Virus record (IMG/VR): IMGVR_UViG_3300027749_002876
Location: 1 to 64,000 of that record
Strand: one strand, 5' to 3'
Length of the DNA: 64,000 bases
Part shown: positions 846-63,732 of the stretch, one piece after another
Numbering within the stretch: position 1 is the stretch's first letter
Layout of the letters: each line of letters opens with the position of its first letter
Notes under the pieces: model-generated
Told to the model about the DNA's origin: nothing
The model's database searches: none
The model's input: the letters and a program-made list of their open reading frames with translations, nothing else
Translations under genes and position numbers: made by a program

Positions 846-3119
846 ATGACAAATTCACCGGAAATTGAAAGCATTATCGAACAAGCCATTGTTTATGCCA
901 AAGAGCGTAAACACCAATATTGCACCTTAGAACATTTATTACTCGCATTAGTCACACATACCCCATTTAAAAAATGCTTAGACGGTTTTGGAGCAGATTC
1001 TGATTTACTAAGTCAAGAAATTGGTGCATATTTAGATAGCCTACACGCAATTGAACTTAAAGGTGTAGCCGCAGAAGATATTCAACCAAGAAAAACTAAT
1101 AGTCTTGAACGAACCATGAATCGTTCTGTGACACAAGTATTGTTTACCGGTCGCAGACAAGTCACAACTATTGATTTGTACCTATCAATTGCAAGTGAAG
1201 GTAATAGTCATGCACATTATTTCTTATTGAAATACGGTGTCAACAAACAGGAATTTTTAACTCATTGGCAAAAAACTTATAAGGGTGCTGAATTCACATC
1301 TAAATTATCAGAAGGTCAAGCAGAAGAAATTTTAGAAGAATACACAACTAATCTTTCTGACCTTGCACGTAAGGGAAAACTTGAACCACTAATTGGACGT
1401 GTCAAAGAACTTGACGATATTATTAATGTTCTTGCTAAACGATTTAAGTCAAATGTTTTGATGGTAGGTGATCCGGGAGTTGGTAAGACCGCTATTGCTG
1501 AAGGTCTTGCTAATATGATTGCAATGGGAGATTGCCCTGAATTCATTCTAAATCACGAGGTATATTCACTTGAAGTTGGTTCATTACTTGCTGGTAGCAA
1601 ATATAGAGGAGACTTTGAAGAAAAAGTTAAAGCAGTATTAGAAGCGTTAAACACAAAAAAGAAAGCAATTTTGTTTATTGACGAAGCGCACACTATGAGT
1701 GGCAGTGGAAGTGGTAGTGGTGGTAGTGTTGACTTTGCTAACATGATTAAGCCTGCAATTACCAAAGGCACGTTGAAAGTTATTGCTAGTACAACATGGG
1801 AAGAATACTATGACAGTTTTGAAAAAGATCGTGCATTGATGCGTAGATTCTATCGTGTATCAATTGATGAACCCAATCATGATACCACTGTTCGTATTCT
1901 AAGTGGATTGAGTCAACGATTGAGTGACTTTCATAGTGTAAAGATTGGAGAAGATGCTATTACTGCATCAGTTGAGTCAGCCGATCGTTACATTCATGAC
2001 CGCAAAAACCCTGACAAGAGTATTGACTTATTAGATGCAGCCTGTGCTAAACAAAGAGTATTGGGTAACAACGGTGTTGTAATTACCAAAGAATTAATTT
2101 TTGACCAAGTAGAGAAATTCACCGGAGTACCTGCTGATAAACTCAACGGAGATAATATGGATCGTATTCAAACTCTTGAAGTCAATGTCAAGGGTAAATT
2201 ATATGGTCAAGATGAAACTGTTGACAAAGTACTTGAGCGTGTCTATGTTTCATTTGCAGGTATCGGTAGTGAGACTAAACCTACAGCAAGTTTCTTGTTC
2301 TTAGGCCCAACAGGTACAGGCAAAACAGAATTGGCTAAGTTGTTGAGCAAGAACCTTGATATGCCATTACTCAAATATGATATGAGTGAATACGGTGAAC
2401 GACACTCAGTATCAAGTTTGATTGGTCCTCCTCCTGGTTATGTTGGTTTTGGCGATAGTCAAGTAAGCGGTGGACGATTGATTAATGATTTAAGCAAGAA
2501 TCCACACAGCATTTTATTATTTGACGAAGTTGAAAAAGCACACCCAGATATCTTCAACATCTTTTTACAAATGCTAGACGAAGGTCGTGTTACTGGATCG
2601 AATGGTAAAGAAGTTAACTGCAAAAATTCTATCATTATTATGACAAGTAATTTAGGTAGTAGTGATAGTGAACGCAACAACATTGGCTTTGGTAGTCAAG
2701 AGAAATTGGGTGAGGATGACAAAGCACTGAAGGAATTCTTTAAACCAGAATTCAGAAATCGTATTGATTTGGTATGTAAGTTTAATAAACTTGATATGCT
2801 TGCGATTAAGAAGATTGTTGTTAAGTTTTCTGATGAATTGAAAAAACAATTGTTGGATAAACACAACATTACTATTAATTTATCTGAGCCAGTAGTTGAA
2901 TATCTGGCAGAGCAAGGTTACGATAAGAAAATGGGCGCTCGACCGTTAGCACGAAAAATTGACGAATTGATTCGTGTTCCTCTTAGTAAGAAAATTTTAT
3001 TTGAACGAATCAAAAACGCAACCGTAACAGCGGTGATGGGCGATGAGGGCATTGAATATACAGTTGCTCAAAAAGCAACAGCAAGAGTAGGCGAAGATGG
3101 GATTATTGAAATTAGCTGA
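846..3119 (+). CDS. clpA: ATP-dependent Clp protease ATP-binding subunit ClpA
   Basis: Clp N-domain (EHLLLAL), two AAA+ modules (GDPGVGKT, GPTGTGKT, FIDEAH, LFDEVEKAH), GARPL, no ClpB M-domain. Confidence 0.9.
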   Translation: MTNSPEIESIIEQAIVYAKERKHQYCTLEHLLLALVTHTPFKKCLDGFGADSDLLSQEIGAYLDSLHAIELKGVAAEDIQPRKTNSLERTMNRSVTQVLFTGRRQVTTIDLYLSIASEGNSHAHYFLLKYGVNKQEFLTHWQKTYKGAEFTSKLSEGQAEEILEEYTTNLSDLARKGKLEPLIGRVKELDDIINVLAKRFKSNVLMVGDPGVGKTAIAEGLANMIAMGDCPEFILNHEVYSLEVGSLLAGSKYRGDFEEKVKAVLEALNTKKKAILFIDEAHTMSGSGSGSGGSVDFANMIKPAITKGTLKVIASTTWEEYYDSFEKDRALMRRFYRVSIDEPNHDTTVRILSGLSQRLSDFHSVKIGEDAITASVESADRYIHDRKNPDKSIDLLDAACAKQRVLGNNGVVITKELIFDQVEKFTGVPADKLNGDNMDRIQTLEVNVKGKLYGQDETVDKVLERVYVSFAGIGSETKPTASFLFLGPTGTGKTELAKLLSKNLDMPLLKYDMSEYGERHSVSSLIGPPPGYVGFGDSQVSGGRLINDLSKNPHSILLFDEVEKAHPDIFNIFLQMLDEGRVTGSNGKEVNCKNSIIIMTSNLGSSDSERNNIGFGSQEKLGEDDKALKEFFKPEFRNRIDLVCKFNKLDMLAIKKIVVKFSDELKKQLLDKHNITINLSEPVVEYLAEQGYDKKMGARPLARKIDELIRVPLSKKILFERIKNATVTAVMGDEGIEYTVAQKATARVGEDGIIEIS

Positions 3120-6764: not shown

Positions 6765-8807
6765 ATGAACTTAAAAGAGCTTGATTCCTTCAAAATATCT
6801 GACGCCGTCACTTTCCATGACAAGCTTAACCCTGCGTTGTGGGCAGGAAATAAATTGCGTCCTGAAGTTAAAAATCAACTAGAAGAAATAGCAAAAGACT
6901 TCCTAGAAGAAATGGGTATCAATGATTTAGATGTTAGAGATATTACTATCTCTGGGTCTAACGCCGCATACAGTTATACAAAACACAGTGACTTGGATTT
7001 ACATCTCTTAGTCAATATAAATGATTTACCTAATAATGATATATACCGTGAATTCTTTGACGCAAAGAAATCATTATACAACGATAACCATGATATAACT
7101 ATTCATGGGGTTCCCGTAGAGTTATATATACAAGATGCCGCACAACCATCAGTGTCGTTAGGAGAATACAGTTTACAAAATGATAAGTGGTTGCGTATTC
7201 CTACAAAGCGTAGAGCTAACTTTGACCAATCAGCTACAAGATTGAAGTATGAAAAATTACTTGATATTGTAGAAAGAGCATTAGACTCAAAGAACTTAAC
7301 TAAAATTCAAAAAGTATTAAAGAAGATTAAGCAATATCGTCAAGCCGGGTTAGATAAAGGTGGCGAGTTTGGTCCTGAGAATTTAGCATATAAAGCATTG
7401 CGTAGTCAGGGGTATATTACAAAATTACACGATTTAAAAAACAAGTTGCATAGTGAGGTATTAACCATTGAAACTATGTATCAAAACATTGATGAAACCT
7501 TTGACCAACCTTATAAACTTAAATGGGAAAAAAGTGATTACGGTGACGTTGATGCCTATGCTAAAATGGATGATGGTAATTATCTAAGTATTATGTTCAA
7601 CAAAGGATATAATCAAGATAAGGAAGAAGCATGGAGTGTTGAGTTCTACAGAAACAACAGCCAAGAAGTTACCGGTGAGGGTGATGCACAACGTGTATTT
7701 GCTACTGTATTAAGTGCTATTCAAACATTCATTAAAAAATACAAGCCCAACAAAGTAATCTTTTCAGCTAGTAAAGAAGTTGAAGATGGACAAAACTCAG
7801 AAAGTAGAGCAAGACTATATGATAGTTTAGTTCAGCGTTATGCTAGAGCATGGGGATTTAGAGCATTTCGTGCTGATACTGGTAATAAAGTTATATACGA
7901 ATTAAGTAGAAAGCAACCGGTAGATGAAGATATCAGCCGTAGAGGATTCTTAAAAGGCATGGGCGCGGCAGCGGTAACAGGTAGTGCTAAGGCTGGTCAA
8001 TATCAATCTTCTACTGAAATAAGTCCAGAGCAGATGCAACAAATTTGGAAGCCAAGAAAAGGTGAGTTAGAAACTAGATGCTATGCTATATTAAAATCAT
8101 TTGCTAATAGTATAGCCGAATCGCATCCTGATTGGGTTAAAGTAATTCAAAAAATAAAAGTAAACACTACTTTAGGTGATAAAGTATTTCGTCAAGGAAA
8201 TGCCGCAAATTCTAGAGTATCATCTAGGGTAGTAAATGGTAAACCGATAGGTGTACAAGCCGGTCAAATTGGTATCGAAACAACTGTATTTTGGGATGCT
8301 CCTAATGATACGCTTGCTTTTATTTTAGGTCATGAGTGTGGACATATAATTATGAATCATGGGTTTTCTTTGGCATCTGATGCTAGAAATAATGAACAAG
8401 AAGCAGATATTATTGGAGCCTCTCTTGCTAAAAAAATAGGTTATGACAGGGCTAATTTCTTTAATTTTTTATTCAATGCTAAAGCTGAACAATTAAAAAA
8501 TGGATCACCCAATGATCCTCATTTAGAACCAGTTGATAGAGTAAAGTTTTTGAAAAAGAATGCTGATTTTGAATTATCACATAACACTATACAATATATT
8601 GATTCACTTGCTCAACAACTAAAGCAAGGCTTAGCAGAAGCAAGTGGCTATATCCCTAGTGAAAAAGAAAAAAACGATCCACGTTTTAAGACAGCATTAA
8701 CAGTAGATGTAGGACCATATAGCATCAAAAAGAACGCAAAAGCATTTAGCTGGCTTACATCAAGGGCCGGCATTCCACCAACAGCAAGCCCAAATGGTAA
8801 GGTATGA
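6765..8807 (+). CDS. modular polyprotein: Pol-beta-type nucleotidyltransferase + unknown domain + internal Tat signal and M48-like HExxH peptidase + short tail module
   Basis: GSN...SDLDLH...ELY; SRRGFLK at 7935-7955; HECGH at 8331-8345, EQEAD; start moved to the ATG 4 nt after TAAATA. Confidence 0.75.
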   Translation: MNLKELDSFKISDAVTFHDKLNPALWAGNKLRPEVKNQLEEIAKDFLEEMGINDLDVRDITISGSNAAYSYTKHSDLDLHLLVNINDLPNNDIYREFFDAKKSLYNDNHDITIHGVPVELYIQDAAQPSVSLGEYSLQNDKWLRIPTKRRANFDQSATRLKYEKLLDIVERALDSKNLTKIQKVLKKIKQYRQAGLDKGGEFGPENLAYKALRSQGYITKLHDLKNKLHSEVLTIETMYQNIDETFDQPYKLKWEKSDYGDVDAYAKMDDGNYLSIMFNKGYNQDKEEAWSVEFYRNNSQEVTGEGDAQRVFATVLSAIQTFIKKYKPNKVIFSASKEVEDGQNSESRARLYDSLVQRYARAWGFRAFRADTGNKVIYELSRKQPVDEDISRRGFLKGMGAAAVTGSAKAGQYQSSTEISPEQMQQIWKPRKGELETRCYAILKSFANSIAESHPDWVKVIQKIKVNTTLGDKVFRQGNAANSRVSSRVVNGKPIGVQAGQIGIETTVFWDAPNDTLAFILGHECGHIIMNHGFSLASDARNNEQEADIIGASLAKKIGYDRANFFNFLFNAKAEQLKNGSPNDPHLEPVDRVKFLKKNADFELSHNTIQYIDSLAQQLKQGLAEASGYIPSEKEKNDPRFKTALTVDVGPYSIKKNAKAFSWLTSRAGIPPTASPNGKV

Positions 8808-10006
8808 ACGATACTATTTGTAAATATGTATTCAATAGTATCACCATATCAAACAGCGGAACAGTAGACCCTTGTTGTGCACCAAATGGCCCGCATACTA
8901 AAGTATACCATGATAAAATAAAAAATCCTTTAGTTATACATGATGACTTTAATGAGGTATTGAACAACACCCAAATAGTTAATCTTAGAAAATCAATGGT
9001 TGCCGGAGAAAAAAATTCACTATGCGATACATGTTGGCAGAGTGAAAGAATTAATGGTGAGAGTGAGAGAACTTTAGGAAATACAAATTTACGAAATTCT
9101 GATGTATATAACAAAATAATTGATTTTTCAAATATATTTCATATTAACTTATTTTTAGGAAATAAATGTAATTTAGCATGTAGAATGTGTAGTCCTTGGT
9201 GCAGTTCATTAATAGCAAAACAAACTGACATTATTTACCAACGACCACCTACACCAATTATTCAATTTAATGATGATACTCAACAAAGAATCATTGAATT
9301 TATAGACAATAGTGAAAACTTAGAAAAAATTCATATGTATGGTGGTGAACCATTAATAAATGATTTCTATGATTTAATTTGCTCACATTTAATAGCTAAT
9401 GGAAGAGCCTCAAAAATCACATTGGATCTTTCAACTAATCTGCAAGTTGATTTAGAAAGAAAAAATGAATTACATCGTCACTTTAAGAATGTACACATTG
9501 CAGTAAGTGTAGACGGTGAGGGGGATACATATGAGTACATCAGATGGCCCGGTAATTGGAATAAAATACAAAATAACTTAAAAATATTAAGTAATACTAG
9601 GAACGATTTCCATGTCTCATCAGTAGTACAAAATTTAAATATTGATAATCTGTCAAATTTGATGGTATATTTAAGCACCATTGAAAATTTTAAATATCAA
9701 AATAGTACATACCGCAAAGTAACTAGTCACACCAATATAAATGATATTAAAATTATACCAACATGGGTTATAGAGCGTGAAATAGATCGTTTAAAAGCAT
9801 TAAATCAAAACATGAATTATACTATACATGCTTTAGTTAAGATGCTAGAAGCCGAAGTTGAACCATCACGTAACTTAGCATACGAAGAAGTTGCTACTTT
9901 CTTCAAACAACAGAAAGATTGGGATTCTCTTAGAAATCAAAATCTTTTTAAAACAAAGCCTCATTTTTTAGAGTTGGCCAAGCAATTTAACATCGAACCC
10001 TGGTAA
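8804..10006 (+). CDS. radical SAM protein with N-terminal SPASM/twitch-like Cys cluster
   Basis: CNLACRMC, GGEP, N-terminal C...CC...CxxC. Confidence 0.85.
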   Translation: MNDTICKYVFNSITISNSGTVDPCCAPNGPHTKVYHDKIKNPLVIHDDFNEVLNNTQIVNLRKSMVAGEKNSLCDTCWQSERINGESERTLGNTNLRNSDVYNKIIDFSNIFHINLFLGNKCNLACRMCSPWCSSLIAKQTDIIYQRPPTPIIQFNDDTQQRIIEFIDNSENLEKIHMYGGEPLINDFYDLICSHLIANGRASKITLDLSTNLQVDLERKNELHRHFKNVHIAVSVDGEGDTYEYIRWPGNWNKIQNNLKILSNTRNDFHVSSVVQNLNIDNLSNLMVYLSTIENFKYQNSTYRKVTSHTNINDIKIIPTWVIEREIDRLKALNQNMNYTIHALVKMLEAEVEPSRNLAYEEVATFFKQQKDWDSLRNQNLFKTKPHFLELAKQFNIEPW

Positions 10007-37884: not shown

Positions 37885-37913
37885 TTGACTTTATTGCGTA
37901 GGTATGTTACACT
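37885..37913 (+). promoter_or_regulatory. sigma70-type promoter for uvsE
   Basis: TTGACT-17 nt-TACACT. Confidence 0.6.
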
Positions 37914-37921
37914 ACATGTAT

Positions 37922-37927
37922 TATTTA
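37922..37927 (-). promoter_or_regulatory. late promoter for the minus-strand operon
   Basis: TGATAAATA on the minus strand upstream of 37866. Confidence 0.55.
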
Positions 37928-37942
37928 TCACTTTGGACTACT

Positions 37943-38974
37943 ATGCACTCTTTTGACATTACTACTAAACGCATTGGCTTTGCTTGTAAATTTGCTGAAA
38001 TCAACAAGAAGGGAGAAATTGCGTCTGTCGAGGGTCTGAATACAGGTGGAACTACACTTGCTTGGGCACAGCGTAACAAGCGTGATGTTGTAGAACAAAA
38101 AATCATTGATGTAGCAAAGAGTAATATTCTTGCTACTCACGCACTAGTTAAAAAGGTAGCAACGCTAGAACCCAGTCTACGTATGGTTCGTCTAACTAGT
38201 GATATGTTCAGCTTCTATACACATGATGATTACAAAGAATTCTGGCACAGTATTGATGTTCAATCTAGCTTAGAACGTTGGATGGCACCTATTGGTGAAA
38301 CTGCACGTGCTAATGATGTTCGGTTGTCATTTCATCCGGATCAGTTTGTAGTTTTAGCAAGTGACCGTGAAGAAGTAGTAAATAAGAGTATAGAAGAATT
38401 TGAATATCATGTTGACATGGCTCGATGGATGAGTTATGGTAAACAGTTTCAGGATATCAAAATCAACGTACACATCAGTGGTCGTAAAGGTCCACAGGGC
38501 ATTCGTGATGTGTATGGTCGACTATCACCCGAAGCCCGCAACACACTAACACTAGAGAATGAAGAATACACACATGGACTATCTGACTGCTTATCGTTAT
38601 CTGACCTCGTCCCTACGGTCATGGACATTCACCATAATTGGATACGTGAGGGAGAATACATTGCCCATAATGATGCGCTTGTACAGCGTGTTATTGACAG
38701 TTGGCGTGGCATTCGCCCTACTTGCCATTACAGTGTTAGCCGCGAAGATGTACTCACAGGCCATTCCACTACACAATTACCCGATCATGGTGCGCTGATT
38801 GAATCGGGATACAGTAAACAGAAACTAAGGGCACATAGTGACTACTATTGGAACGAAGCGGTGAACGATTGGGCATTGACATTCTGTGATAACTTTGATA
38901 TTATGTGTGAGTCTAAGGGTAAAAACTTAGCCAGCTTTAAATTACTTGAAAGATATAAATGTTTAACAAAATAA
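37943..38974 (+). CDS. uvsE: UV-damage endonuclease
   Basis: IGFACK, RLSFHPDQF, LENEE, DIHH, AHSD, ESKGK. Confidence 0.92.
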   Translation: MHSFDITTKRIGFACKFAEINKKGEIASVEGLNTGGTTLAWAQRNKRDVVEQKIIDVAKSNILATHALVKKVATLEPSLRMVRLTSDMFSFYTHDDYKEFWHSIDVQSSLERWMAPIGETARANDVRLSFHPDQFVVLASDREEVVNKSIEEFEYHVDMARWMSYGKQFQDIKINVHISGRKGPQGIRDVYGRLSPEARNTLTLENEEYTHGLSDCLSLSDLVPTVMDIHHNWIREGEYIAHNDALVQRVIDSWRGIRPTCHYSVSREDVLTGHSTTQLPDHGALIESGYSKQKLRAHSDYYWNEAVNDWALTFCDNFDIMCESKGKNLASFKLLERYKCLTK

Positions 38975-43843: not shown

Positions 43844-44096
43844 TTACTTTGAAAAAAATCGTTACAAACCTGTCTATGAGTTTATGGCACGTGTAACCGG
43901 TATGCATGGAAAGATTCGTTGGATAGGAAGTGTCGGCAACGATACTGTTATCAGCGACCAAGTAGGACCTATGTTACACATACACCTTGACTTACCATTA
44001 AAGATTGATAGTAAATATACATATCATCTCTTTGTGAAACACAAAGGTGTAAAAAGATTGACAAATTTTAATGACGAAAAAGTTTCCAAACGATAA
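43830..44096 (+). CDS. hypothetical protein
   Basis: AAGGA SD. Confidence 0.7.
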   Translation: MNLADYFEKNRYKPVYEFMARVTGMHGKIRWIGSVGNDTVISDQVGPMLHIHLDLPLKIDSKYTYHLFVKHKGVKRLTNFNDEKVSKR

Positions 44097-45333
44097 TGTA
44101 ACTTGTATATCACCTTGGTATGAATTACGCATTGATGCTAATGGAGCATTAAGATGTTGTCATTCAATTAGACAAGCACAAGCTGAACAAACTAGTCTAA
44201 GTTTCTTGGATTGGTTCAACCACGTCAATAGTACCAGAACTAATATTATTAATGGTGATGAAAGTATTGGTTGTAGTGCCTGTTATTATAATGAAAAGAA
44301 TAATTTAATCAGTCATAGAATGCAACGCAACATGCAGGCTGCAATATATCACGGCGAATACTTTAATGAAAGTTTAGAACAAAGCCCTGCATATAAACGA
44401 ATGAATAGCAATCAAAAGATATATCCAGCATTCATGCATATTACATTAAGTAATCTTTGTAATTTAAAATGTAGAATGTGTTTCCCTCAATATAGTTCTC
44501 AGTTAACAGATGCATATAAGAAAATAAATTGGTTGAATAAAGACGAACCTACATTAGTTGATTGGACTACTAACGATAATAAATGGAATGAGTTTTTAGA
44601 ATTAGTACAACATAATAATCAATTAATGTCATTGCATTTCATGGGCGGGGAACCACTATACCATAAAAGATTTTACGAGTTTATCGACTACTGTATTGAG
44701 AATAACAAAACAGATTTTCACTTGACATTTGTTACCAACGGTACAATATACAAAGAAGAACTATTTGACAAGTTAAAACATTTCAAATCTGTTCAAATAG
44801 AGATTAGCATAGAGAACCTAAACATTACAAATGATTATATCCGTATAGGTTCTGATTTTAGAACAGTACAAAAAAACATATTGAAGTTTATCGATAAACA
44901 AATGCATGTTGTATTACGTACAGTTCCGCAAGCACTAAGTATTAGTAATTACGATACAATATTAGACTTTGCACTGGAACATAATCTAGGACTTGATAGT
45001 AATGTACTTGACAATCCTCAACATTTAAAGTGTTTTGTCCTCCCAAAACAACTAAAAAATGAGATAGCAGATAAAATTAGGTCTAAATATATACATATAT
45101 TATCATCAAATAACAATTTAAATGAGATTGCGTTATTTAGGTCAGCATTGGGAATAAAGAAACATATTGAATCATTACTTGTTAGGTTGGAAGAAGTTGA
45201 ACCGAGTGATATTGAACAATTAAGACAGAAATTTATAAAACACAATATAGAGTTGGATACTGTGAGCGAATTAAAATTTGCTAACATATACCCAGAACTA
45301 TTGAATTTTTATGCAAAATATAGTACTATTTAA
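44071..45333 (+). CDS. radical SAM protein with SPASM/twitch-like N-terminus (paralogue of 8804)
   Basis: CNLKCRMC, GGEP, TNGT. Confidence 0.85.
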   Translation: MTKKFPNDNVTCISPWYELRIDANGALRCCHSIRQAQAEQTSLSFLDWFNHVNSTRTNIINGDESIGCSACYYNEKNNLISHRMQRNMQAAIYHGEYFNESLEQSPAYKRMNSNQKIYPAFMHITLSNLCNLKCRMCFPQYSSQLTDAYKKINWLNKDEPTLVDWTTNDNKWNEFLELVQHNNQLMSLHFMGGEPLYHKRFYEFIDYCIENNKTDFHLTFVTNGTIYKEELFDKLKHFKSVQIEISIENLNITNDYIRIGSDFRTVQKNILKFIDKQMHVVLRTVPQALSISNYDTILDFALEHNLGLDSNVLDNPQHLKCFVLPKQLKNEIADKIRSKYIHILSSNNNLNEIALFRSALGIKKHIESLLVRLEEVEPSDIEQLRQKFIKHNIELDTVSELKFANIYPELLNFYAKYSTI

Positions 45334-51476: not shown

Positions 51477-51591
51477 TACTCAAGTATTACATTTTTAGCC
51501 CCTCTTTTGGGGCGATCCCACACCCAAAATTTGACAATAAATGGACATTGTGCTATAATAGAATCTTAAACAGTAAAGAAAAGGAAACGAA

Positions 51592-51864
51592 ATGTCAGCA
51601 CTTACAGAATACACATTGGAAATCTACAAAATAGACAAGCGTACCAAAGAGGGTAAGCGACTGGTTGCAAAACAAGATTTTGCTCCTAGTACTAAAGACT
51701 ACATTTCTTGTGTAGCCGAAGGTAAGCGTAAGTTGGGTTTAGTTGTTGAAGTGTTTGAGACCTTTGTTACCCGCAAAAACTTGATGGGTGGCAAGTCATT
51801 CCAAGAACGCTATGACACTCCTTACTATTGCTCACCCTCAAGCGAATCGTACTGGTCAATGTAA
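51592..51864 (+). CDS. early hypothetical protein
   Basis: AAGGA SD, own promoter. Confidence 0.8.
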   Translation: MSALTEYTLEIYKIDKRTKEGKRLVAKQDFAPSTKDYISCVAEGKRKLGLVVEVFETFVTRKNLMGGKSFQERYDTPYYCSPSSESYWSM

Positions 51865-51926
51865 AGGTTGACAATAAATGGATTTGGGTGTATAATACTT
51901 GTATTGACTTAACTAAAGGACTAAAA

Positions 51927-52193
51927 ATGACTAAGAAAATCTCTATCAAAGTATTCGGTGATCCCGGACACGCTTGGGCACGTTTCCCCAAAGCTAAGTT
52001 GGTTAGTCTTGGTATCGCTGATAAGATCACTCCTTACAGTTACCAAAATGGTACTAATGCTTTCCTTGAGGAAGACTGTGATTTGTCAACACTGATGGCA
52101 GTTCTTAAGGCCAAAGGTTATGAAGTAAAATTTAATGAGAGTTTTACCAACAAACAAAGCAAAATCCGCGGTTATTGCTCATACAAAATTTGA
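51927..52193 (+). CDS. early hypothetical protein (DPGHAW...LEEDCD)
   Basis: AAGGA SD before ATG 51927. Confidence 0.8.
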   Translation: MTKKISIKVFGDPGHAWARFPKAKLVSLGIADKITPYSYQNGTNAFLEEDCDLSTLMAVLKAKGYEVKFNESFTNKQSKIRGYCSYKI

Positions 52194-52224
52194 CAATAAA
52201 TGGGCATTGTGCTATAATTCATTT

Positions 52225-52449
52225 ATGAAATCAAAAATCTTTATTAATCAACGTGACAATGACAAGTATTTCAAACAGAAAATGCCTACATGGCGCAATG
52301 GTTTCTGTGAAATAGTCCGTAATGTCACGATTGAAAAGGACCCGCACGACATTTACCTAGACGGTGAGTGGGGTTACATTACGGTCTATGGCCGTAAGAT
52401 TTATGTCACACGGGCCGGCACTGAATTTGCATTTGAAATTCGTGGCTAA
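52225..52449 (+). CDS. early hypothetical protein, probably leaderless
   Basis: ATG 6 nt after TATAAT. Confidence 0.7.
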   Translation: MKSKIFINQRDNDKYFKQKMPTWRNGFCEIVRNVTIEKDPHDIYLDGEWGYITVYGRKIYVTRAGTEFAFEIRG

Positions 52450-52516
52450 AAGGTTGACAATAAATGGTTTTGGGTGTATAATAGAATCTTAAACAGTTAA
52501 ACAACAGGAGTTAAAA

Positions 52517-52783: not shown

Positions 52784-53437
52784 ATGGCTCGCTATCAGAA
52801 ACCCGTTCTTAATCTTGTGGCCGACAACGTGTGGGGTGCGGCATGTCAGGCACAACGATTCAATGGCAGTTATGTTAAGTTGAGTGTTTTGACTGAAGAA
52901 GACAAATCCTCTAACAAACTATCCAATAGTCAACTGATAGAAACTTTCATGGTTGATTCTAGTTTGATTACTGAAGAAGACATGGCACAAGGCAAAAAAG
53001 TTCGTGCTTTTTATCAAGCATTCACTTTCAAAATCTTGCAAGGCAAACACCTAAATGATTTTGACAATACTGCAATGGTGATTGCCAATCGTGATGTTAT
53101 CACTAGCAATTATGATGTTGCGGTTATCGCTAGTTTGCCTAGTTGCTATGAACGTGGTGTTAAGCGTCAATCAGTAGACCGGCGTATTAACTTTGCACGT
53201 GGTGGCTTTATAGGTTCTCTTGGTAAGAAGGTTTCAACAAGTGTTGAAGTATTGAGGTCAGTGTACTCACAAACTTACAATGTAAATTTTGTAACCGGTA
53301 TCAATGATGATGACCAAGTTGTATTCTTTGCTTACAAGAAAGAATTGGAAGCAGGAAAGATGTACGACATTTACGGCAATGTGAAAGCACACCGTGATAC
53401 TACAACCCAACTTAATCGTGTAAAGGTGATTGCATGA
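52784..53437 (+). CDS. hypothetical protein, possible C-terminal OB-fold
   Basis: AAGGAG SD; GNVKAH...TQLNRVK. Confidence 0.7.
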   Translation: MARYQKPVLNLVADNVWGAACQAQRFNGSYVKLSVLTEEDKSSNKLSNSQLIETFMVDSSLITEEDMAQGKKVRAFYQAFTFKILQGKHLNDFDNTAMVIANRDVITSNYDVAVIASLPSCYERGVKRQSVDRRINFARGGFIGSLGKKVSTSVEVLRSVYSQTYNVNFVTGINDDDQVVFFAYKKELEAGKMYDIYGNVKAHRDTTTQLNRVKVIA

Positions 53438-53661
53438 ATACAGAATTGATTCAGAAATTAGAGTCGCAATGTATCGTCCGTGAAATGCGAGGTACTAATG
53501 CGTTTGATAATTATATGGTTGATCGGTTCGATACTGAAAAGTTTGCAGAACTGATTGTTAAAGAATGTGACCGATATGCACGTAGTGCATGGGAACATGG
53601 CCCGTTGTTAGGTAGAGATTTACTAATCCATTTTGGAGTTGAGGAGATGAATGATGAATAA
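53434..53661 (+). CDS. KFAELIV-family small protein
   Basis: EKFAELIVKEC...HFGVEE. Confidence 0.75.
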   Translation: MNTELIQKLESQCIVREMRGTNAFDNYMVDRFDTEKFAELIVKECDRYARSAWEHGPLLGRDLLIHFGVEEMNDE

Positions 53662-53884
53662 AGATATGCAAATTTTGTTTAAGCAAGCAGGTGGTTATAT
53701 TGAAACTGATGAAGAGGGTAATATTTTTACCTATGCACATGATTTTGATCCTGAACAATTTGCCCGATCACTAGTTATGGAGTGCTATCAGACATTAATC
53801 AATCATGGTTATACGGATGCGGCACATGTGTTAGAAACAGAGTTTGCTGAAGAATGGCAAAAATATGAATTTCCGGAGATTTGA
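53651..53884 (+). CDS. divergent KFAELIV-family protein
   Basis: EQFARSLVMEC. Confidence 0.7.
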   Translation: MMNKDMQILFKQAGGYIETDEEGNIFTYAHDFDPEQFARSLVMECYQTLINHGYTDAAHVLETEFAEEWQKYEFPEI

Positions 53885-53885
53885 A

Positions 53886-54014
53886 ATGACAAATTTATTA
53901 GTGGGTTTTATTCTTGGTATTGTTGTCTCAACGGTAGGCTTTAGTGGTATCGCTAAGATGGCTGACAGAGGCGTGGACAAGGTTAAAGAAGTAACCATCG
54001 AACAAGCCAAGTGA
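53886..54014 (+). CDS. 42-aa membrane peptide, absent from ORF track
   Basis: GGAG SD; MTNLLVGFILGIVVSTVG. Confidence 0.7.
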   Translation: MTNLLVGFILGIVVSTVGFSGIAKMADRGVDKVKEVTIEQAK

Positions 54015-54043
54015 AATTTAAACGCAAACAACTGGAGGATAAA

Positions 54044-54469
54044 ATGGGTCTAGATATGTATGCTTATGTTGCCGGCCGAAAAGGTCAACAAAGTGAATAT
54101 TATGAAACTGCTGAGTTTGACAAAACCATGAATGAGTTTGTAAGCAATACGGTGAATAAACCATATGAGATTGCTTATTGGCGTAAACATCCTAATCTAC
54201 ATGGTTGGATGGAACGTCTTTGGGAGCGCAAAGGAAAACCCGGTGCAGGAGAAACTGAAACATTCAATGGCATTGAGTTAGAACTAAACTGGGATGACTT
54301 GGATGAGCTTGAACGAGCAGTACGACACGGTCAACTTCCAGACACACAGGGTTTCTTCTTTGGGAATCCTGCAGACAGTCATTACTATGAGCAAGACCTT
54401 GAGTTTGTAAACAACGCTAAGGCAGAAGTGTTCTTAGGATTGAAAGTATTTTACAACAGTAGCTGGTGA
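54044..54469 (+). CDS. hypothetical phage protein (MGLDMY...YWRKH...YNSSW)
   Basis: GGAGG SD before ATG 54044. Confidence 0.8.
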   Translation: MGLDMYAYVAGRKGQQSEYYETAEFDKTMNEFVSNTVNKPYEIAYWRKHPNLHGWMERLWERKGKPGAGETETFNGIELELNWDDLDELERAVRHGQLPDTQGFFFGNPADSHYYEQDLEFVNNAKAEVFLGLKVFYNSSW

Positions 54470-54582
54470 TGTATATCACAAATAAATACGATTCAGTTAG
54501 GTTGCCATATAGCGAAGAAATGTTAGAATGGTTATTGGCAACTTATCCTAAATCACAATATAGAGTAGTAGAAGATGAATGA
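54469..54582 (+). CDS. 37-aa hypothetical protein, absent from ORF track
   Basis: TGATG coupling. Confidence 0.6.
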   Translation: MYITNKYDSVRLPYSEEMLEWLLATYPKSQYRVVEDE

Positions 54583-54904
54583 AAATATCAAAGCAGGTGC
54601 AGATATTCACGCCGGTGACGGTGGATACAGTTTAGGCACACAAGAAAAGCATGACGAGTTTGTCAAAGGTCGTAATCAATCATTAGGTAAGATGCGAATT
54701 CGAGAATTAATGACGCAAGCTGGTACTGACACTAGCGGTAAGTGGATGGGTATTGAACATGCTGAAAAGTTCGCCGAGTTGATTGTTAGGGAATGTGCCA
54801 ATCATTGTGATTTACTATTAGATCATAAGATTAGTTCAGAATGGTCAAGAGGAACACACGATTGTTCCAGAGCGATTAAACAACATTTCGGAGTTAAAGA
54901 ATGA
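54575..54904 (+). CDS. KFAELIV-family protein with N-terminal extension
   Basis: RIREL...KFAELIVREC...HFGVKE. Confidence 0.75.
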   Translation: MNENIKAGADIHAGDGGYSLGTQEKHDEFVKGRNQSLGKMRIRELMTQAGTDTSGKWMGIEHAEKFAELIVRECANHCDLLLDHKISSEWSRGTHDCSRAIKQHFGVKE

Positions 54905-55086
54905 ACGAACGAATTTTAGAATTAGCAAGACAAGTATGGCCTGATCCTAATACCAGCCATGTCAATCACAAAAAGTTCGCCGAGTTGATTGTTAGGGAAT
55001 GTATGGACACGGTGGCTAATTGTAAAGGTACAACCAAATTTGACCATTGGAATACAATCAAAGAACATTTCGGAGTTGAAGAATGA
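54901..55086 (+). CDS. KFAELIV-family small protein
   Basis: MNERI...KFAELIVREC...HFGVEE. Confidence 0.8.
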   Translation: MNERILELARQVWPDPNTSHVNHKKFAELIVRECMDTVANCKGTTKFDHWNTIKEHFGVEE

Positions 55087-55280
55087 ACGAACGAATTCGA
55101 CAACTTGCTGAACAAGTGGATAAAGAGTTCAATAGTCCTTATGACAGGCACAAAGCAATTGAGAAGTTTGCTTTGTTAATTGTGAAAGAATGTCAGAAAT
55201 TAAATTCAAAAGAATTGTCAATCACGGCCATTGAACGGTTGCTACCATTGTATAAAGAACATTTCGGAGTTGAAGAATGA
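55083..55280 (+). CDS. KFAELIV-family small protein
   Basis: MNERI...KFALLIVKEC...HFGVEE. Confidence 0.8.
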   Translation: MNERIRQLAEQVDKEFNSPYDRHKAIEKFALLIVKECQKLNSKELSITAIERLLPLYKEHFGVEE

Positions 55281-55402
55281 TTCCATGGTATAAGAAATTA
55301 TTGCTTATGATTATAGCACCTTTTATTATTGGTGCTTGGTGTGTAATGAATCCCCGTAAAGTATGGGTACAGGCTAAAAAAGATTTTGGAGTTAAAGAAT
55401 GA
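55277..55402 (+). CDS. 41-aa membrane peptide ending DFGVKE, absent from ORF track
   Basis: ATGA-coupled on both sides. Confidence 0.7.
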   Translation: MIPWYKKLLLMIIAPFIIGAWCVMNPRKVWVQAKKDFGVKE

Positions 55403-56745
55403 GTGCAAGTTGGATTAATAAATTAAATGAATCAGATAGCCGTCTTCATAAGGAAGATATTATCAAACAAGCATTAGAGGCAAGTGTCCTCGGTAGCATT
55501 AATAGTCAAGTGTTTTTAGGCTTTCTCAAAGCCTGTTACAATCCCTACGTAACATTTGGTGTCAAACAGATTCCTGACACAGTTGGTATTGTTGATGCAG
55601 AAAATCCCTGGACTGAATTCAATGAATTAATGGTGCAACTTAGTCACCGTAGGTTGACAGGTCATGCCGCACGTGATGCTATTCAAAGTACGGCTGAACG
55701 ATTTGATAGTGATGAATGGAATACATTCTTAGCACCTATATTGCGTAGGGACTTACGTGCAGGTATCAGTGATAAAACAATCAACAAAATTTGTAAGGGC
55801 ACTGACTACGAGATTCCAATCTTTGGTTGCCAACTAGCAACTAACAGTGAAGGTCGTCCTGAGATGAAGGGTACGAAACGTCTTGAGCCTAAGTTGGATG
55901 GTGTTCGTGCATTGTTCACTGTTATCCCCAGTGACTTTGATATCACTGTAGTTTGCTACAGTCGCAACGGTAAAGTGTTTGAGAACTTTGGTCACATCGA
56001 AAATCAGATTCACGACAATTGGACCAAGATGGTTCGTGCGTGTAATGGTGTAGACCAAGGTCGTAGTCTCGTTGATGGTTTTGTACTTGACGGTGAAGTG
56101 ATTGGACATAGTTTCCAAGAACTTATGCGACAAGCACGCCGAAAAACTGACGCACAGGCAGAGGATAGTGTATTAAACATCTTTGACATTATCCCTCTCG
56201 CAGACTTCCGTCGAGGTCATTGGAACGCACAATTGCGTAAGCGTATTGCTTTGCTTGATAGTATGCGCCCAGTTGTTGATACAATGCCCAATGTTGAACT
56301 ACTGCCACACATCATGGTTGACTTAGATACAGCCGCAGGTAAGGATCAACTTGAGCGTTATGCTAAGGACAACGTTAATGCAGGATTTGAAGGCATTATG
56401 ATTAAAGAATTAGAAGCCCCATATCAGTGCAAGCGTAGCACTGATTGGATGAAGTGGAAGCCCACTATTACTGTAGACTTAGAGGTTGTAGGTGTTGAAG
56501 AAGGTACTGGACGTAATCTTGGACGCTTGGGAGCACTTGTTTGTGCAGGTGTAGATGATGGGAAAGAAATTTCAGTCAATGTTGGTAGTGGCTTTAGTGA
56601 CGGTGATAGAGATGATTACTGGAATAATCGCAATCTGGTCATTGGCAGAACTTGTGAGGTACTGTGTGATGTGATTACACAAAACCAAGATGGTACATAC
56701 AGTTTGCGCTTTCCACGCTTTGTTAGATTCCGTGATGACAAATAA
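55399..56745 (+). CDS. lig: ATP-dependent DNA ligase
   Basis: EPKLDGVR, LDGEV, EGIMIK, WMKWK, GSGF, SLRFPRF. Confidence 0.96.
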   Translation: MSASWINKLNESDSRLHKEDIIKQALEASVLGSINSQVFLGFLKACYNPYVTFGVKQIPDTVGIVDAENPWTEFNELMVQLSHRRLTGHAARDAIQSTAERFDSDEWNTFLAPILRRDLRAGISDKTINKICKGTDYEIPIFGCQLATNSEGRPEMKGTKRLEPKLDGVRALFTVIPSDFDITVVCYSRNGKVFENFGHIENQIHDNWTKMVRACNGVDQGRSLVDGFVLDGEVIGHSFQELMRQARRKTDAQAEDSVLNIFDIIPLADFRRGHWNAQLRKRIALLDSMRPVVDTMPNVELLPHIMVDLDTAAGKDQLERYAKDNVNAGFEGIMIKELEAPYQCKRSTDWMKWKPTITVDLEVVGVEEGTGRNLGRLGALVCAGVDDGKEISVNVGSGFSDGDRDDYWNNRNLVIGRTCEVLCDVITQNQDGTYSLRFPRFVRFRDDK

Positions 56746-62529: not shown

Positions 62530-63732
62530 ATGTCAACAGAAACAAAACTAAACCATTGCACATTTTGTGGTGCCCATAAAGAAAAAGTTAAAAAACTCAT
62601 TGTCAGTGAAGAGGTGGCAATTTGCAGTGATTGCGTAGACCTATGCAATAAATTGATGATGGATGATAGCCATGAAAAAATAGAACCAACGGAACACAAT
62701 GTATCCTACGATCCAGAGTCTATCAAAGAATTTTTAGACCAACACATCATAGGACAAGATAGTGCTAAGGGTGTGTTAAGTGTAGCAATTGCTAACCACT
62801 ATAAACGAATCAACAAGCCACCAAAAGATTTAGAAATCTCTAAGGGTAATGTTTTGTTAGTAGGACCCACTGGATCAGGTAAAACATTGCTTGCTAAAAC
62901 AGTAGCAAAATACTTAGAAGTCCCCTTTATTATAGCAGATGCTACAAGTATTACTGAAGCAGGTTATGTAGGTGATGATGTTGAATCAATGATTAGTATG
63001 CTAGTCAATGCCGCCGGCGGCGATCCTAGACTAGCAGAACGCGGTATTGTGTTTGTTGATGAGATTGACAAGATTGCTCGCAGAGGTGAGTCAGCAAGTG
63101 TTACACGTGATGTATCCGGTGAGGGTGTGCAACAAGCATTACTTAAATTAGTTGAAGGTACTATATGTCGTATTCCAGCAAGTGGTGGACGCAAACACCC
63201 CGGTGGTGATATGCTTGAGATTAATACAAAAGACATTCTGTTTATTGCAGGTGGTGCGTTTGTAGGATTAAAAGAAATTATCAACAACCGCGAGAATGGA
63301 ACAAGTATTGGCTTTGGTGCAGAGATTAAAGATAATCGCAAAGAGTCAGAATTGACAAATGTGTCGCCTGATGACTTAGTTAAATTTGGAATGATTCCTG
63401 AGTTTATTGGTCGTTTTACTACTACAGTAAGTGTGAGTGATTTAAATAAAGAAGAATTGATTAAGGTTCTTAAGGAAGTTAAGAACAACTATATCGACCA
63501 ATACAAATATTTGCTCAGTTTAGACAACATTGCAATAGACTTTAATGAAGATGCATTGGATCAACTAGCAGAGAATTGCTTAAAATTAAAGACAGGTGCT
63601 CGTGGATTACATACTGAAATTGAACGCACATTAATGCCACATATGTTTAACACTAAAAAGTACCGTGAAAACAATGTTACCGAGATAAATATAGACAGAG
63701 ATTTAGTTTTGGAGCCAAAATCATTAGCATGA
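62530..63732 (+). CDS. clpX: ATP-dependent Clp protease ATP-binding subunit ClpX
   Basis: CTFC...CSDC Zn domain, GPTGSGKT, EAGYVG, RDVSGEGVQQ, RKH, IGF loop, GARGL. Confidence 0.97.
   Translation: MSTETKLNHCTFCGAHKEKVKKLIVSEEVAICSDCVDLCNKLMMDDSHEKIEPTEHNVSYDPESIKEFLDQHIIGQDSAKGVLSVAIANHYKRINKPPKDLEISKGNVLLVGPTGSGKTLLAKTVAKYLEVPFIIADATSITEAGYVGDDVESMISMLVNAAGGDPRLAERGIVFVDEIDKIARRGESASVTRDVSGEGVQQALLKLVEGTICRIPASGGRKHPGGDMLEINTKDILFIAGGAFVGLKEIINNRENGTSIGFGAEIKDNRKESELTNVSPDDLVKFGMIPEFIGRFTTTVSVSDLNKEELIKVLKEVKNNYIDQYKYLLSLDNIAIDFNEDALDQLAENCLKLKTGARGLHTEIERTLMPHMFNTKKYRENNVTEINIDRDLVLEPKSLA

Follow-up and report, generated by a model that had tools for sequence, protein, structure and literature searches.

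In the gp38 tail-fibre adhesins of T-even phages, hypervariable segments are separated by conserved glycine-rich motifs that form the structural core, and genetic exchanges within or near these motifs create chimeras with new combinations of variable segments (PMC3157838, which cites Tetart et al. 1998). In the hyperplastic regions of T4-type phages, short conserved repeats, the PeSL regulatory cassettes, flank small non-essential genes of unknown function, and recombination between the repeats causes insertion, deletion and replacement between close relatives in a plastic setting with strong sigma-70-type promoters (PMC2839356, PMC4122927). In Rhs (PMC2935791), CDI and other polymorphic-toxin loci, a conserved coding motif marks the boundary at which variable C-terminal ends are displaced by recombination, and diversity comes from module replacement and not from point mutation. 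Integrons hold tandem arrays of small, promoterless, exchangeable cassettes that are bounded by conserved sites and expressed from an upstream promoter. Gene-conversion systems of antigenic variation have been reviewed in general (PMC4534519); in the Neisseria pilE/pilS system, short conserved stretches are interspersed with variable mini-cassettes, which allows segmental homologous exchange among many copies. Here we describe a cluster of five small paralogous genes (A to E, 61-109 aa) adjacent to a phage DNA ligase gene, located in a 64,000-nt stretch (the window; positions 1 to 64,000 of the 524-kb IMG/VR record IMGVR_UViG_3300027749_002876). The genes follow an architecture of box A, V1, box B, V2 and box C, in which three DNA-conserved coding boxes of about 27-32 nt separate two module slots, with a stop/start overlap (ATGA). 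The features of the region are as follows.

51531..52482, + strand: four perfect sigma-70 consensus promoter cassettes (51531, 51868, 52190, 52454).
53434..53661, + strand: gene A (75 aa), a family member with drifted boxes (box A 53434-53469, box B 53539-53568, box C core 53629-53645) and a 6-aa extra tail; detected by the family profile, with nine orthologues in ligase-anchored relatives.
53651..53884, + strand: gene B (77 aa), a divergent family member with a degenerate box B at 53756-53785 and no box C, overlapping gene A by 11 nt; its V1 type occurs joined to ordinary box B, V2 and an FGV tail in the sequences L117, L136 and L106.
53886..54582, + strand: three non-family small ORFs that interrupt the cluster and are part of the syntenic backbone, a 42-aa hydrophobic ORF (53886-54014), a 141/152-aa ORF (54011/54044-54469) and a 38-aa ORF (54466-54582).
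54575..54904, + strand: gene C (109 aa), in which a portable 40-aa N-terminal module (54575-54691), found in 233 proteins with many V1/V2 partners, is followed by box A (54692-54727), V1, box B (54767-54796), V2 and box C (54878-54904).
54901..55086, + strand: gene D (61 aa), the minimal unit, with box A 54901-54936, V1, box B 54973-55002, V2 and box C 55060-55086.
55083..55280, + strand: gene E (65 aa), with box A 55083-55118, V1, box B 55164-55193, V2 and box C 55254-55280; its V2 module is nearly invariant in hundreds of proteins.
55277..55402, + strand: a 41-aa hydrophobic ORF, not a family member, ending in a solo box C (55376-55402) that supplies GGAG, the stop codon and the ligase start; an orthologue with the same tail occurs only in L134.
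55399..56745, + strand: ATP-dependent DNA ligase (448 aa; Pfam PF01068/PF14743, PHROG 114), used as the anchor for comparing 80 relatives at 80-93% amino acid identity.

While the locus shares features with each of the described systems, it also departs from each of them. It has no sequence or fold relation to gp38, which is a virion adhesin with four variable loops in a single gene, whereas the unit here is a predicted three-helix non-structural protein of 60-110 aa present in tandem multi-copy arrays, belonging to a family of thousands of clusters, with boxes fixed at synonymous sites and a box C that doubles as a translational-coupling signal. PeSLs are non-coding promoter and terminator elements between genes, whereas the recombination handles here are coding and in frame, so that half-genes (V1 or V2) as well as whole genes are shuffled; PeSL-like promoter cassettes do lie just upstream of the cluster, and the mini-circles reported for PeSLs were not examined here. 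The polymorphic toxins are large bacterial proteins with cognate immunity genes and a single boundary, while these are tiny phage proteins with two slots and no toxin or immunity signature was seen, the five family proteins giving no Pfam match at E<=0.05. An integron would require a tyrosine-recombinase integrase (IntI) next to the array, and a PF00589 search of the record gave 0 matches while all 14 control genomes were positive; there are also no attC-type structured non-coding sites, the boundaries are coding boxes, and exchange also occurs inside the gene. The Neisseria system uses one expression locus plus silent donor copies within a single bacterial genome, whereas here all copies appear expressible and the donor pool is spread across a phage metapopulation. 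The array likewise lacks the non-coding direct repeats of constant length and near-constant spacers of a CRISPR array, as its repeats are in-frame coding boxes of two alternating kinds and its "spacers" encode protein modules of varied length under purifying selection; cas genes were not searched for.

All of the repeats listed in an earlier note, which had described the region 53434-55402 from sequence alone as a coding repeat-spacer array, are present, and the observation is real. Box B (30 nt, KFAELIVREC) is identical at 54767-54796 and 54973-55002 and degenerate at 53539-53568, where 4 of its first 20 nt differ, and at 55164-55193. The box C+A junctions at 54884-54915 and 55066-55097 differ at 1 of 32 nt, the 27 nt at 55060-55086 and 55254-55280 are identical, and partial copies lie at 53629-53645 and 55376-55402. 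A shuffled genome gave 0 hits for any box at the mismatch levels used, and given only the amino acids and the background codon usage of these phages, two genes would by our calculation share all ten box B codons about 1 time in 10,000. Between the boxes, the segments of C, D and E are unalignable and differ in length. The 41-aa hydrophobic ORF ends in a box C copy with 3 mismatches, the only solo box in the record, and the ligase ATG (55399) overlaps its TGA as ATGA, in agreement with the note. Two points require correction: the identical box B of C and D is essentially the family-wide consensus DNA and not necessarily the product of a local C/D exchange, and genes A and B are also members, so that the cluster holds five family genes interrupted by the three unrelated ORFs.

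The genes belong to a very large, uncharacterised family of small acidic proteins (median pI 4.97) found in lake viral metagenomes. A profile of the 11 copies in the record found 7,692 representatives of 50%-identity clusters at E<=1e-3 and 614 at E<=1e-10. The 11 copies should not be read as paralogues of one genome, since the record looks composite and three of the six distant copies lie in the orthologous ligase locus of a second, related genome. No Pfam or PHROG hit below E=0.03 was obtained for A-E. In the phage GenBank collection, blastn of the locus gave one irrelevant 110-nt hit and tblastn with two family members gave nothing significant, although tblastn is weak here because the variable segments break the alignment. 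An exact box B pattern searched in 185,579 species genomes hit only 13 short contigs, all freshwater MAG contigs from mixed phyla, probably mis-binned phage DNA. A full-text search for the box B peptide found 0 papers, and topical literature searches found nothing on this family.

The V1 and V2 segments are discrete modules that recur in different combinations. Among 151 proteins there are 125 V1 and 117 V2 modules, and all 15 recurrent V1 modules and all 16 recurrent V2 modules occur with different partners; no pair shares both modules, which is partly true by construction as the representatives were clustered at 50% identity. One V2 module (92% mean identity) is joined to 39 different V1 modules among the 117 best hits to E that could be segmented. 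The breakpoints map to the boxes. Gene D and its positional counterpart in the relative L162 are identical for 92 nt, from the ATG to the middle of box B, after which V2 is 30% identical, while the adjacent ligases are only 78.7% identical. The last 117 nt of E are 91-97% identical in four contigs that differ in V1 and in the adjoining sequence, and for three contigs, L018, L194 and L195, the neighbouring genes also differ. Gene A and the copy at 481.7 kb are similar from box B onward only. In 25 of 26 pairs that share V1 and 20 of 22 pairs that share V2, nucleotide similarity ends at an edge of box B. Breakpoints were thus found at the ATG/box A, within box B and at the box C ATGA.

The earlier note had named fixation of the array among relatives, together with box conservation explained by protein constraint alone, as what would overturn its reading, and neither was found. 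The backbone is syntenic in the 80 ligase relatives, but 0-5 family genes lie upstream of the ligase, at varying positions, and genes at the same position keep V1 and swap V2; 59 of 80 other loci carry two or more copies, up to 12. The boxes are conserved at the DNA level against the local codon bias. Rare codons are fixed, with CGA at 94% (background 12%), GCC at 86% (18%), TTG at 93% (24%) and CGG at 58% (5%), and Glu is GAG in 89% of genes at one box B position and GAA in 93% five codons later. In 4,814 gene pairs with unrelated V1 and V2, the fractions of identical codons are 0.74, 0.74 and 0.83 in boxes A, B and C, against 0.43-0.45 expected. The exact 32-nt junction occurs in at least 120 IMG/VR contigs, and summed contig depth in four lake metagenomes is 250-500 over the boxes, against about 3-20 over unique parts. 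On the synonymous divergence of boxes and variable parts, a comparison the note had asked for, the nine gene A orthologues give pN/pS of 0.23 for V1 and 0.11 for V2, while box B of this vertically inherited gene accumulates synonymous change as fast as V1 and V2 (pS 0.34 against 0.29-0.43), and the boxes are therefore not under an absolute DNA-level constraint. The term "hypervariable" used in the note is accordingly misleading, since the segments are stable modules under purifying selection that are replaced wholesale.

Structure prediction, likewise suggested beforehand, gave three-helix proteins for both E and D (AlphaFold2 pLDDT 91.7 and 89.4), with V1 and V2 at the two helix connections. 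Box A is the N-terminal helix (consensus MNERIxELAEQAG), box B the centre of helix 2 (EKFAELIVREC), and box C the end of helix 3 plus the tail (IKEHFGVEE). The E homodimer prediction scored 0.56 against a best control of 0.02; that mark was reached by 20 of 30 proteins solved as pairs and 1 of 23 solved as single chains, the runs agree in at least 59% of contacts and partner pLDDT is at least 68. Heterodimers were not modelled. In the predicted dimer the interface is formed by box B, with the invariant Ala and Cys on the two-fold axis, and V1 and V2 would be displayed at opposite poles; that the three boxes meet at the centre of the unit is inferred from helix lengths and topology and not from measured coordinates. 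No structural or sequence relative of known function was found: Foldseek against PDB gave a best E of 1.3, AFDB clusters a best E of 4.6, BFVD and an ESM Atlas shape search returned only uncharacterised viral proteins, and the best VIA-align Z of 5.5 is below the noise level for helical proteins, as is a resemblance to CsoR/FrmR (Z 4.6-5.3), which is kept only as a lead.

Box C also carries a GGAG Shine-Dalgarno sequence, a 7-nt spacer and the ATGA overlap for whatever gene follows, and 85 of 103 family genes end in ATGA. Six perfect sigma-70 promoter matches occur in the window against 0.04 expected, and no terminator-like site lies between the last of the four upstream cassettes and the ligase, so they probably drive early transcription of the cluster.

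Taken together, the interpretation in the earlier note of a recombination-driven cassette array producing a helical scaffold with two variable regions is supported, although the locus is a tandem paralogue cluster in a plastic early-gene region and not a dedicated repeat-spacer machine. What the analysis shows is that V1 and V2 are discrete modules under purifying selection exchanged among family members and among phage genomes by recombination with breakpoints inside the boxes, that whole cassettes are gained and lost at the C+A junctions, and that the boxes are kept nearly identical as DNA across the family; how the exchange is driven and what the proteins do is inferred or predicted. The behaviour places the locus with PeSL-type and gp38-type repeat-mediated modular shuffling, a mechanism class and not a homology family. 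No exchange event was observed directly, as population variation was examined in assembled Logan contigs and not in raw reads; these contigs break at the boxes and so show that the boxes are shared but not which structural variants exist, and recombination products were not assayed. We infer general homologous recombination between 30-50-nt identical boxes during co-infection and within arrays, possibly using the phage's own RecA/UvsX-like enzyme, a RecA-like gene being present in the record. In this view frequent exchange homogenises the boxes, while copies that settle at a fixed position, such as gene A, drift away from the consensus. The proteins are inferred to be early-expressed binders of variable targets, such as host or defence proteins; the support is circumstantial, resting on their small acidic character, the plastic region downstream of strong promoters and the rapid turnover among relatives; the function and the target are unknown, and the anti-defence or host-binding role proposed in the note was not tested. 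This overall explanation is held with fairly high, though not full, confidence.

Other explanations appear considerably less likely. An ordinary tandem paralogue family, with boxes kept only by the needs of the fold and variable parts diverged by point mutation and small indels after duplication, would agree with the mapping of the boxes to helices and to the predicted dimer interface and with the vertical evolution of gene A, but it is contradicted by the fixed rare codons and position-specific Glu codons, by the recurrence of modules in different combinations and by the near-identical runs of 92-117 nt that end at the boxes in genomes otherwise about 79% identical or unrelated, and is considered very unlikely. 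Equally improbable is that the mosaics are largely chimeric assemblies. Metagenome assemblers can join contigs wrongly across shared exact repeats of k-mer size, so some single-contig mosaics could be chimeras, and the record itself looks composite; however, many combinations recur on independent contigs and samples (the window array on 9 or more contigs, the combinations P0105 on 38 and P0116 on 23), L118 and L119 carry the same D-type recombinant independently, Illumina reads span 30-50-nt repeats, and codon fixation and copy-number variation do not depend on assembly joins. Targeted hypermutation by diversity-generating retroelements or a similar mechanism, suggested only by a superficial likeness in the alternation of constant and variable in-frame segments, is all but excluded, as a PF00078 search of the whole record found no reverse transcriptase (the control search detected the family in 3 of the 14 control genomes), V1 is 12-50 aa and V2 17-40 aa with both unalignable between modules, whereas such a target has a variable region of fixed length that differs from a template repeat mainly at adenines, and the modules, which are under purifying selection, recur unchanged in other genes.

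An RNA- or DNA-level function of the boxes, such as translational coupling, mRNA stability or a binding site for a regulator or small RNA, with recombination as a by-product, is unlikely, although the coupling signal explains the GGA and GTT codons of box C and the box A codons lie in the translation-initiation region. Junction RNAs are no more structured than shuffles (z from -0.97 to +1.25), there is no Rfam hit, box B lies mid-gene and uses GC-rich rare codons with no obvious signal, and vertically inherited copies let the boxes drift; moreover, such a function would only re-assign the cause of the codon fixation without explaining the mosaics. It is similarly unlikely that the boxes are recognition sites for a dedicated enzyme, either a homing-type GIY-YIG nuclease that triggers local gene conversion or an unknown recombinase. 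Strict DNA conservation of short boxes is what a site-specific enzyme would require, and a small GIY-YIG ORF lies within 5 kb of family genes in 18 of 80 loci, one of them directly upstream of the family gene at 430,699 in the same record. Yet 62 of 80 loci have none nearby, the nearest to the window's array in this part of the record is at 103 kb, the record has no integrase, the association may be plain synteny among related phages, and unequal-exchange scars, such as a duplicated box B in P0124 and P0165, fit homology-driven exchange.

A further and more speculative possibility, which we regard as rather unlikely but not excluded, is that the boxes are evolved recombination handles. In such a model a phage metapopulation would maintain three nucleotide-identical in-frame sequences so that thousands of V1 and V2 binding modules, plus an optional N-terminal module, can be re-assorted freely among genes and genomes, and box B would in addition let any two family members pair. 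The result would be a combinatorial repertoire of dimeric three-helix binders directed at fast-changing host targets such as defence systems, a phage-carried, recombination-based counterpart of immune-receptor-like diversification working without any dedicated enzyme.

The family is one of the most abundant in these lake phage metagenomes and nevertheless has no name, no Pfam or PHROG entry and no structural relative. On the practical side, its boxes are k-mer-sized exact repeats that will fragment or mis-join phage assemblies, and in-frame repeat arrays of this kind can also mislead repeat finders. The family offers a natural library of small helical scaffolds, predicted to be dimeric, with two exchangeable surfaces, which are candidates for new anti-defence or host-takeover proteins and for binder engineering. 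It shows an unusually clean case of evolution by exchange of sub-genic modules, in which the boundaries can be read off at single-nucleotide resolution and the handles are fixed at synonymous sites, and it makes it possible to ask whether short coding sequences can be maintained because they promote recombination, that is, by second-order selection.

The analyzed region, 53434-55402 of the window on the + strand, carries a chain of translationally coupled small ORFs that ends at an ATP-dependent DNA ligase (PF01068, PHROG 114). The reading frames are arranged as follows.

53434-53661 (+), gene A, 75 aa
53651-53884 (+), gene B, 77 aa
53886-54014 (+), hydrophobic ORF, 42 aa
54011/54044-54469 (+), unnamed ORF, 141/152 aa
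54466-54582 (+), unnamed ORF, 38 aa
54575-54904 (+), gene C, 109 aa
54901-55086 (+), gene D, 61 aa
55083-55280 (+), gene E, 65 aa
55277-55402 (+), hydrophobic ORF, 41 aa
55399-56745 (+), ATP-dependent DNA ligase

The earlier note had described this stretch as an array of small ORFs built from constant DNA boxes and variable in-frame segments, and every repeat that it listed is indeed present. The 30-nt box B is identical at 54767 and 54973, the box C+A junction at 54884 and 55066 differs at 1 of 32 nt, and 27 nt are identical at 55060 and 55254, with weaker copies located at 53539, 53629, 55164 and 55376. A shuffled genome yields none of these, and from the background codon usage, identical codons across the ten residues of box B are expected about once in 10,000 pairs. 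The proteins A, B, C, D and E align as one family with the order box A, first variable segment (V1), box B, second variable segment (V2) and box C. The 41-aa hydrophobic ORF is unrelated to the family but ends in a copy of box C and looks like a chimera left by exchange at that box; the same ORF with the same tail occurs only in one relative, L134.

A profile built from the copies in the record found 7,692 cluster representatives (50% identity) at E<=1e-3 among 1.84 billion proteins, and almost all of the 150 representatives listed have the same architecture, with the three boxes nearly invariant and V1 and V2 unrelated. Searches of Pfam, PHROGs, PDB, AFDB and the ESM Atlas give no annotated relative, BFVD returns only "uncharacterized protein, uncultured Caudovirales phage", and deposited phage genomes gave no significant tblastn hit. 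The sequencing runs that hold the locus are freshwater or lake metagenomes, and an exact box B pattern occurs in only 13 short contigs among 185,579 species genomes, all of them freshwater MAG contigs. Of 80 IMG/VR loci found with the family, 59 carry two or more copies within 10 kb, and up to 12 are found in tandem.

The variable segments are shuffled modules and not hypermutated sequence. At a 60% identity threshold, 125 V1 and 117 V2 modules were found among 151 proteins, and every recurrent module occurs with different partners: 33 pairs share V1 with unrelated V2, whereas 88 pairs share V2 with unrelated V1. No pair shares both modules, although this is partly by construction since the representatives are clustered at 50% identity. 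Among the 117 best hits to E that could be segmented, one V2 module (92% mean identity) is joined to 39 different V1 modules. In nine orthologues of gene A, V1 and V2 have pN/pS of 0.23 and 0.11, respectively, so they are functional and conserved, and the record has no reverse transcriptase. The 40-aa N-terminal extension of gene C (54575-54691) is a third portable module, which occurs at 85-100% identity in 233 proteins with many V1/V2 combinations and once on a MazG-like protein (in the metagenomic proteins P0358 and P0359 it is fused to a MazG-like NTP pyrophosphatase). A similar AGDGGYS motif opens the GTP cyclohydrolase I of contig L018.

The breakpoints lie in the boxes. Gene D and the gene at the same position in relative L162 are identical for 92 nt, from the ATG to the middle of box B, after which V2 is 30% identical and box C is 24/27 identical, while the upstream flank is unrelated (38%) and the adjacent ligase genes are only 78.7% identical. 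Two further relatives, L118 and L119, independently carry the same V1 with a third V2. The last 117 nt of E, from box B to the stop, are 91-97% identical in four contigs that differ in V1 and in the adjoining sequence examined, and for contigs L018, L194 and L195 the neighboring genes also differ. Gene A and the copy at 481.7 kb of the record are similar from box B onward only. Among 226 distinct family gene sequences, similarity stops at the 3′ edge of box B in 25 of 26 pairs that share V1 at >=90% nt, and at the 5′ edge in 20 of 22 pairs that share V2. The longest exact matches between genes of different contigs are mostly the 45-51-nt C+A junction. Finally, some metagenomic relatives carry a duplicated box B inside one gene (P0124, P0165) and others are two-unit fusion proteins (P0122, P0127, P0128, P0135), both of which are expected products of unequal exchange between boxes.

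The boxes are conserved as DNA. In 103 distinct family genes the box codons are fixed against the local codon bias, as listed below.

Codon usage at box positions in 103 distinct family genes, compared with the background.
Codon (position): in boxes; background
CGA: 94%; 12%
AAC: 91%; 39%
CTT: 75%; 18%
GCC: 86%; 18%
TTG: 93%; 24%
CGG: 58%; 5%
GGA: 97%; 20%
GAG (one Glu in box B): 89%; 25%
GAA (Glu five codons later): 93%; 75%

In 4,814 gene pairs with unrelated V1 and V2, the fractions of identical codons at same-residue sites are 0.74, 0.74 and 0.83 for boxes A, B and C, respectively, against an expectation of 0.43-0.45. This comparison bears on a condition that the earlier note had set against its own reading, namely that protein constraint alone might explain the boxes, and the codon identity exceeds what that would predict. 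The exact 32-nt junction is present in at least 120 IMG/VR contigs, and in four lake metagenomes the summed contig depth is 250-500 over the boxes and about 3-20 over the unique parts, with many discordant sequences flanking the boxes. The identical box B of C and D is therefore essentially the family consensus. RNA structure does not explain the conservation, whereas the codons of box C are explained in part by its second job: GGAG, a 7-nt spacer and ATGA couple translation to the next gene, whatever that gene is. Of the 103 genes, 85 end in ATGA, and 65 of those are followed by a non-family gene. In the vertically inherited gene A lineage, however, box B drifts at synonymous sites as fast as V1 and V2, which likely reflects homogenization by ongoing exchange in the mobile pool rather than an absolute constraint.

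A fixed array among relatives had likewise been named beforehand as an outcome that would speak against the cassette reading, and the array is not fixed. In a comparison anchored on the ligase (80 loci, 80-93% aa identity), the backbone of the 217-aa gene, the 42-aa ORF, the 141-aa gene and the ligase is syntenic, but the number of family genes upstream of the ligase ranges from 0 to 5, and their positions vary from after the 217-aa gene to before or after the ligase. Same-position genes keep one module and swap the other. Near-identical contigs from nine samples reproduce the array of the window, which argues against an assembly artefact for this locus. The cassettes also insert far from ligase loci, since in contig L018 (4498-6010) an 88%-identical copy of gene E sits alone between a PTPS (queD-like) gene and a 271-aa gene in a queuosine-type and MazG neighborhood, and a related contig, that of P0016, has two family genes at that spot.

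The 524,565-bp record itself looks composite. Positions 1-172,923, which hold the window, are collinear with part of the rest and 46% alignable to positions >172,923 (mainly ~175-192 kb and ~400-524 kb) at 78.7% identity, 99% of it inverted. Positions 172,924-177,012 recur at the end of the record (520,477-524,565; 99.6% identity, direct), as if 172.9-520.5 kb were one circular genome of about 347.5 kb joined to a 173-kb piece of a relative. Three of the six distant copies of the family (479.7-481.9 kb) are the orthologous ligase locus of a second, related genome, and contig L146, from the same sample, matches that second locus.

AlphaFold2 predicts three helices for E (pLDDT 91.7; H3-15, H19-44, H47-61) and for D (pLDDT 89.4). 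From the helix lengths, boxes A, B and C should meet at the middle of the long central helix with V1 and V2 at opposite ends, although this is inferred from topology and not from coordinates. The E homodimer passed the prediction test with a score of 0.56 against a best control of 0.02, a mark that was reached by 20 of 30 proteins solved as pairs and 1 of 23 solved as single chains; the runs agree in at least 59% of contacts and the partner pLDDT is at least 68. The model supports binding but does not show it. The predicted interface uses box B residues 29-30, 33-34 and 36-38, where Ala30, Ile33 and Cys37 face their own copies, and His60 touches the partner. The invariant Cys of box B and the near-invariant His of box C lie at or next to the predicted two-fold interface, and VIA-align lists CsoR/FrmR-type three-helix metal sensors at non-significant Z of 4.6-5.3. 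An inter-subunit metal site is conceivable, although it was not tested. Members of the family are mostly acidic, with a median pI of 4.97.

The locus sits in a replication and repair region with a family-B DNA polymerase, UvdE, a 5′-3′ exonuclease, the ligase and Clp-type ATPases. The window encodes a ClpB/ClpA-like double AAA+ protein and a ClpX-like protein with a zinc finger (846-3119 and 62530-63732), as well as two radical-SAM proteins (8804-10006, 44071-45333) and the UvdE endonuclease (37904-38974). Six perfect sigma-70 consensus promoters (TTGACA-17-TATAAT) are found in the window on the + strand (39993, 51531, 51868, 52190, 52454 and 60806), where 0.04 are expected. The four at 51.5-52.5 kb, just upstream of the cluster, share a ~30-nt cassette spaced about 260-340 bp apart in front of small ORFs, and one is preceded by a GC-rich stem-loop, an arrangement that resembles the PeSL cassettes of T4-type phages; no terminator-like site lies before the ligase. 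Small size, acidity, early-type promoters and rapid turnover among relatives are what one sees for host-takeover and anti-defence genes, however, no target is known and such a role is inference only.

The interpretation of the locus as a recombination-driven cassette array is supported, while the anti-defence or host-binding role suggested along with it has only the circumstantial basis described. The recurrence of modules with different partners, the position of the breakpoints, the fixation of the box codons and the variation of the array among relatives come directly from the sequence comparisons, whereas the homogenization of the boxes by exchange, the meeting of the boxes in the fold and the role of the proteins are inferred, and the dimer is predicted. 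The array is not a DGR, integron or CRISPR array. A nuclease-driven variant remains possible, as small GIY-YIG-domain ORFs (about 105-180 aa) lie within 5 kb of family genes in 18 of 80 IMG/VR loci (L021-L100), and in the record one (430406-430672, +) lies immediately upstream of the family gene at 430,699. These could be homing-type nucleases that promote local exchange, or the association could be mere synteny.

The behavior of the family matches recombination-mediated modular shuffling in phages. In gp38 adhesins, conserved glycine-rich motifs separate hypervariable segments and exchanges occur at the motifs (PMC3157838), and PeSL cassettes bound exchangeable small genes in T4-type hyperplastic regions (PMC2839356, PMC4122927). 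The present family differs in that its handles are coding and in frame, are fixed at synonymous sites across thousands of genes, and allow sub-genic as well as whole-gene exchange, while one of them doubles as a coupling signal.
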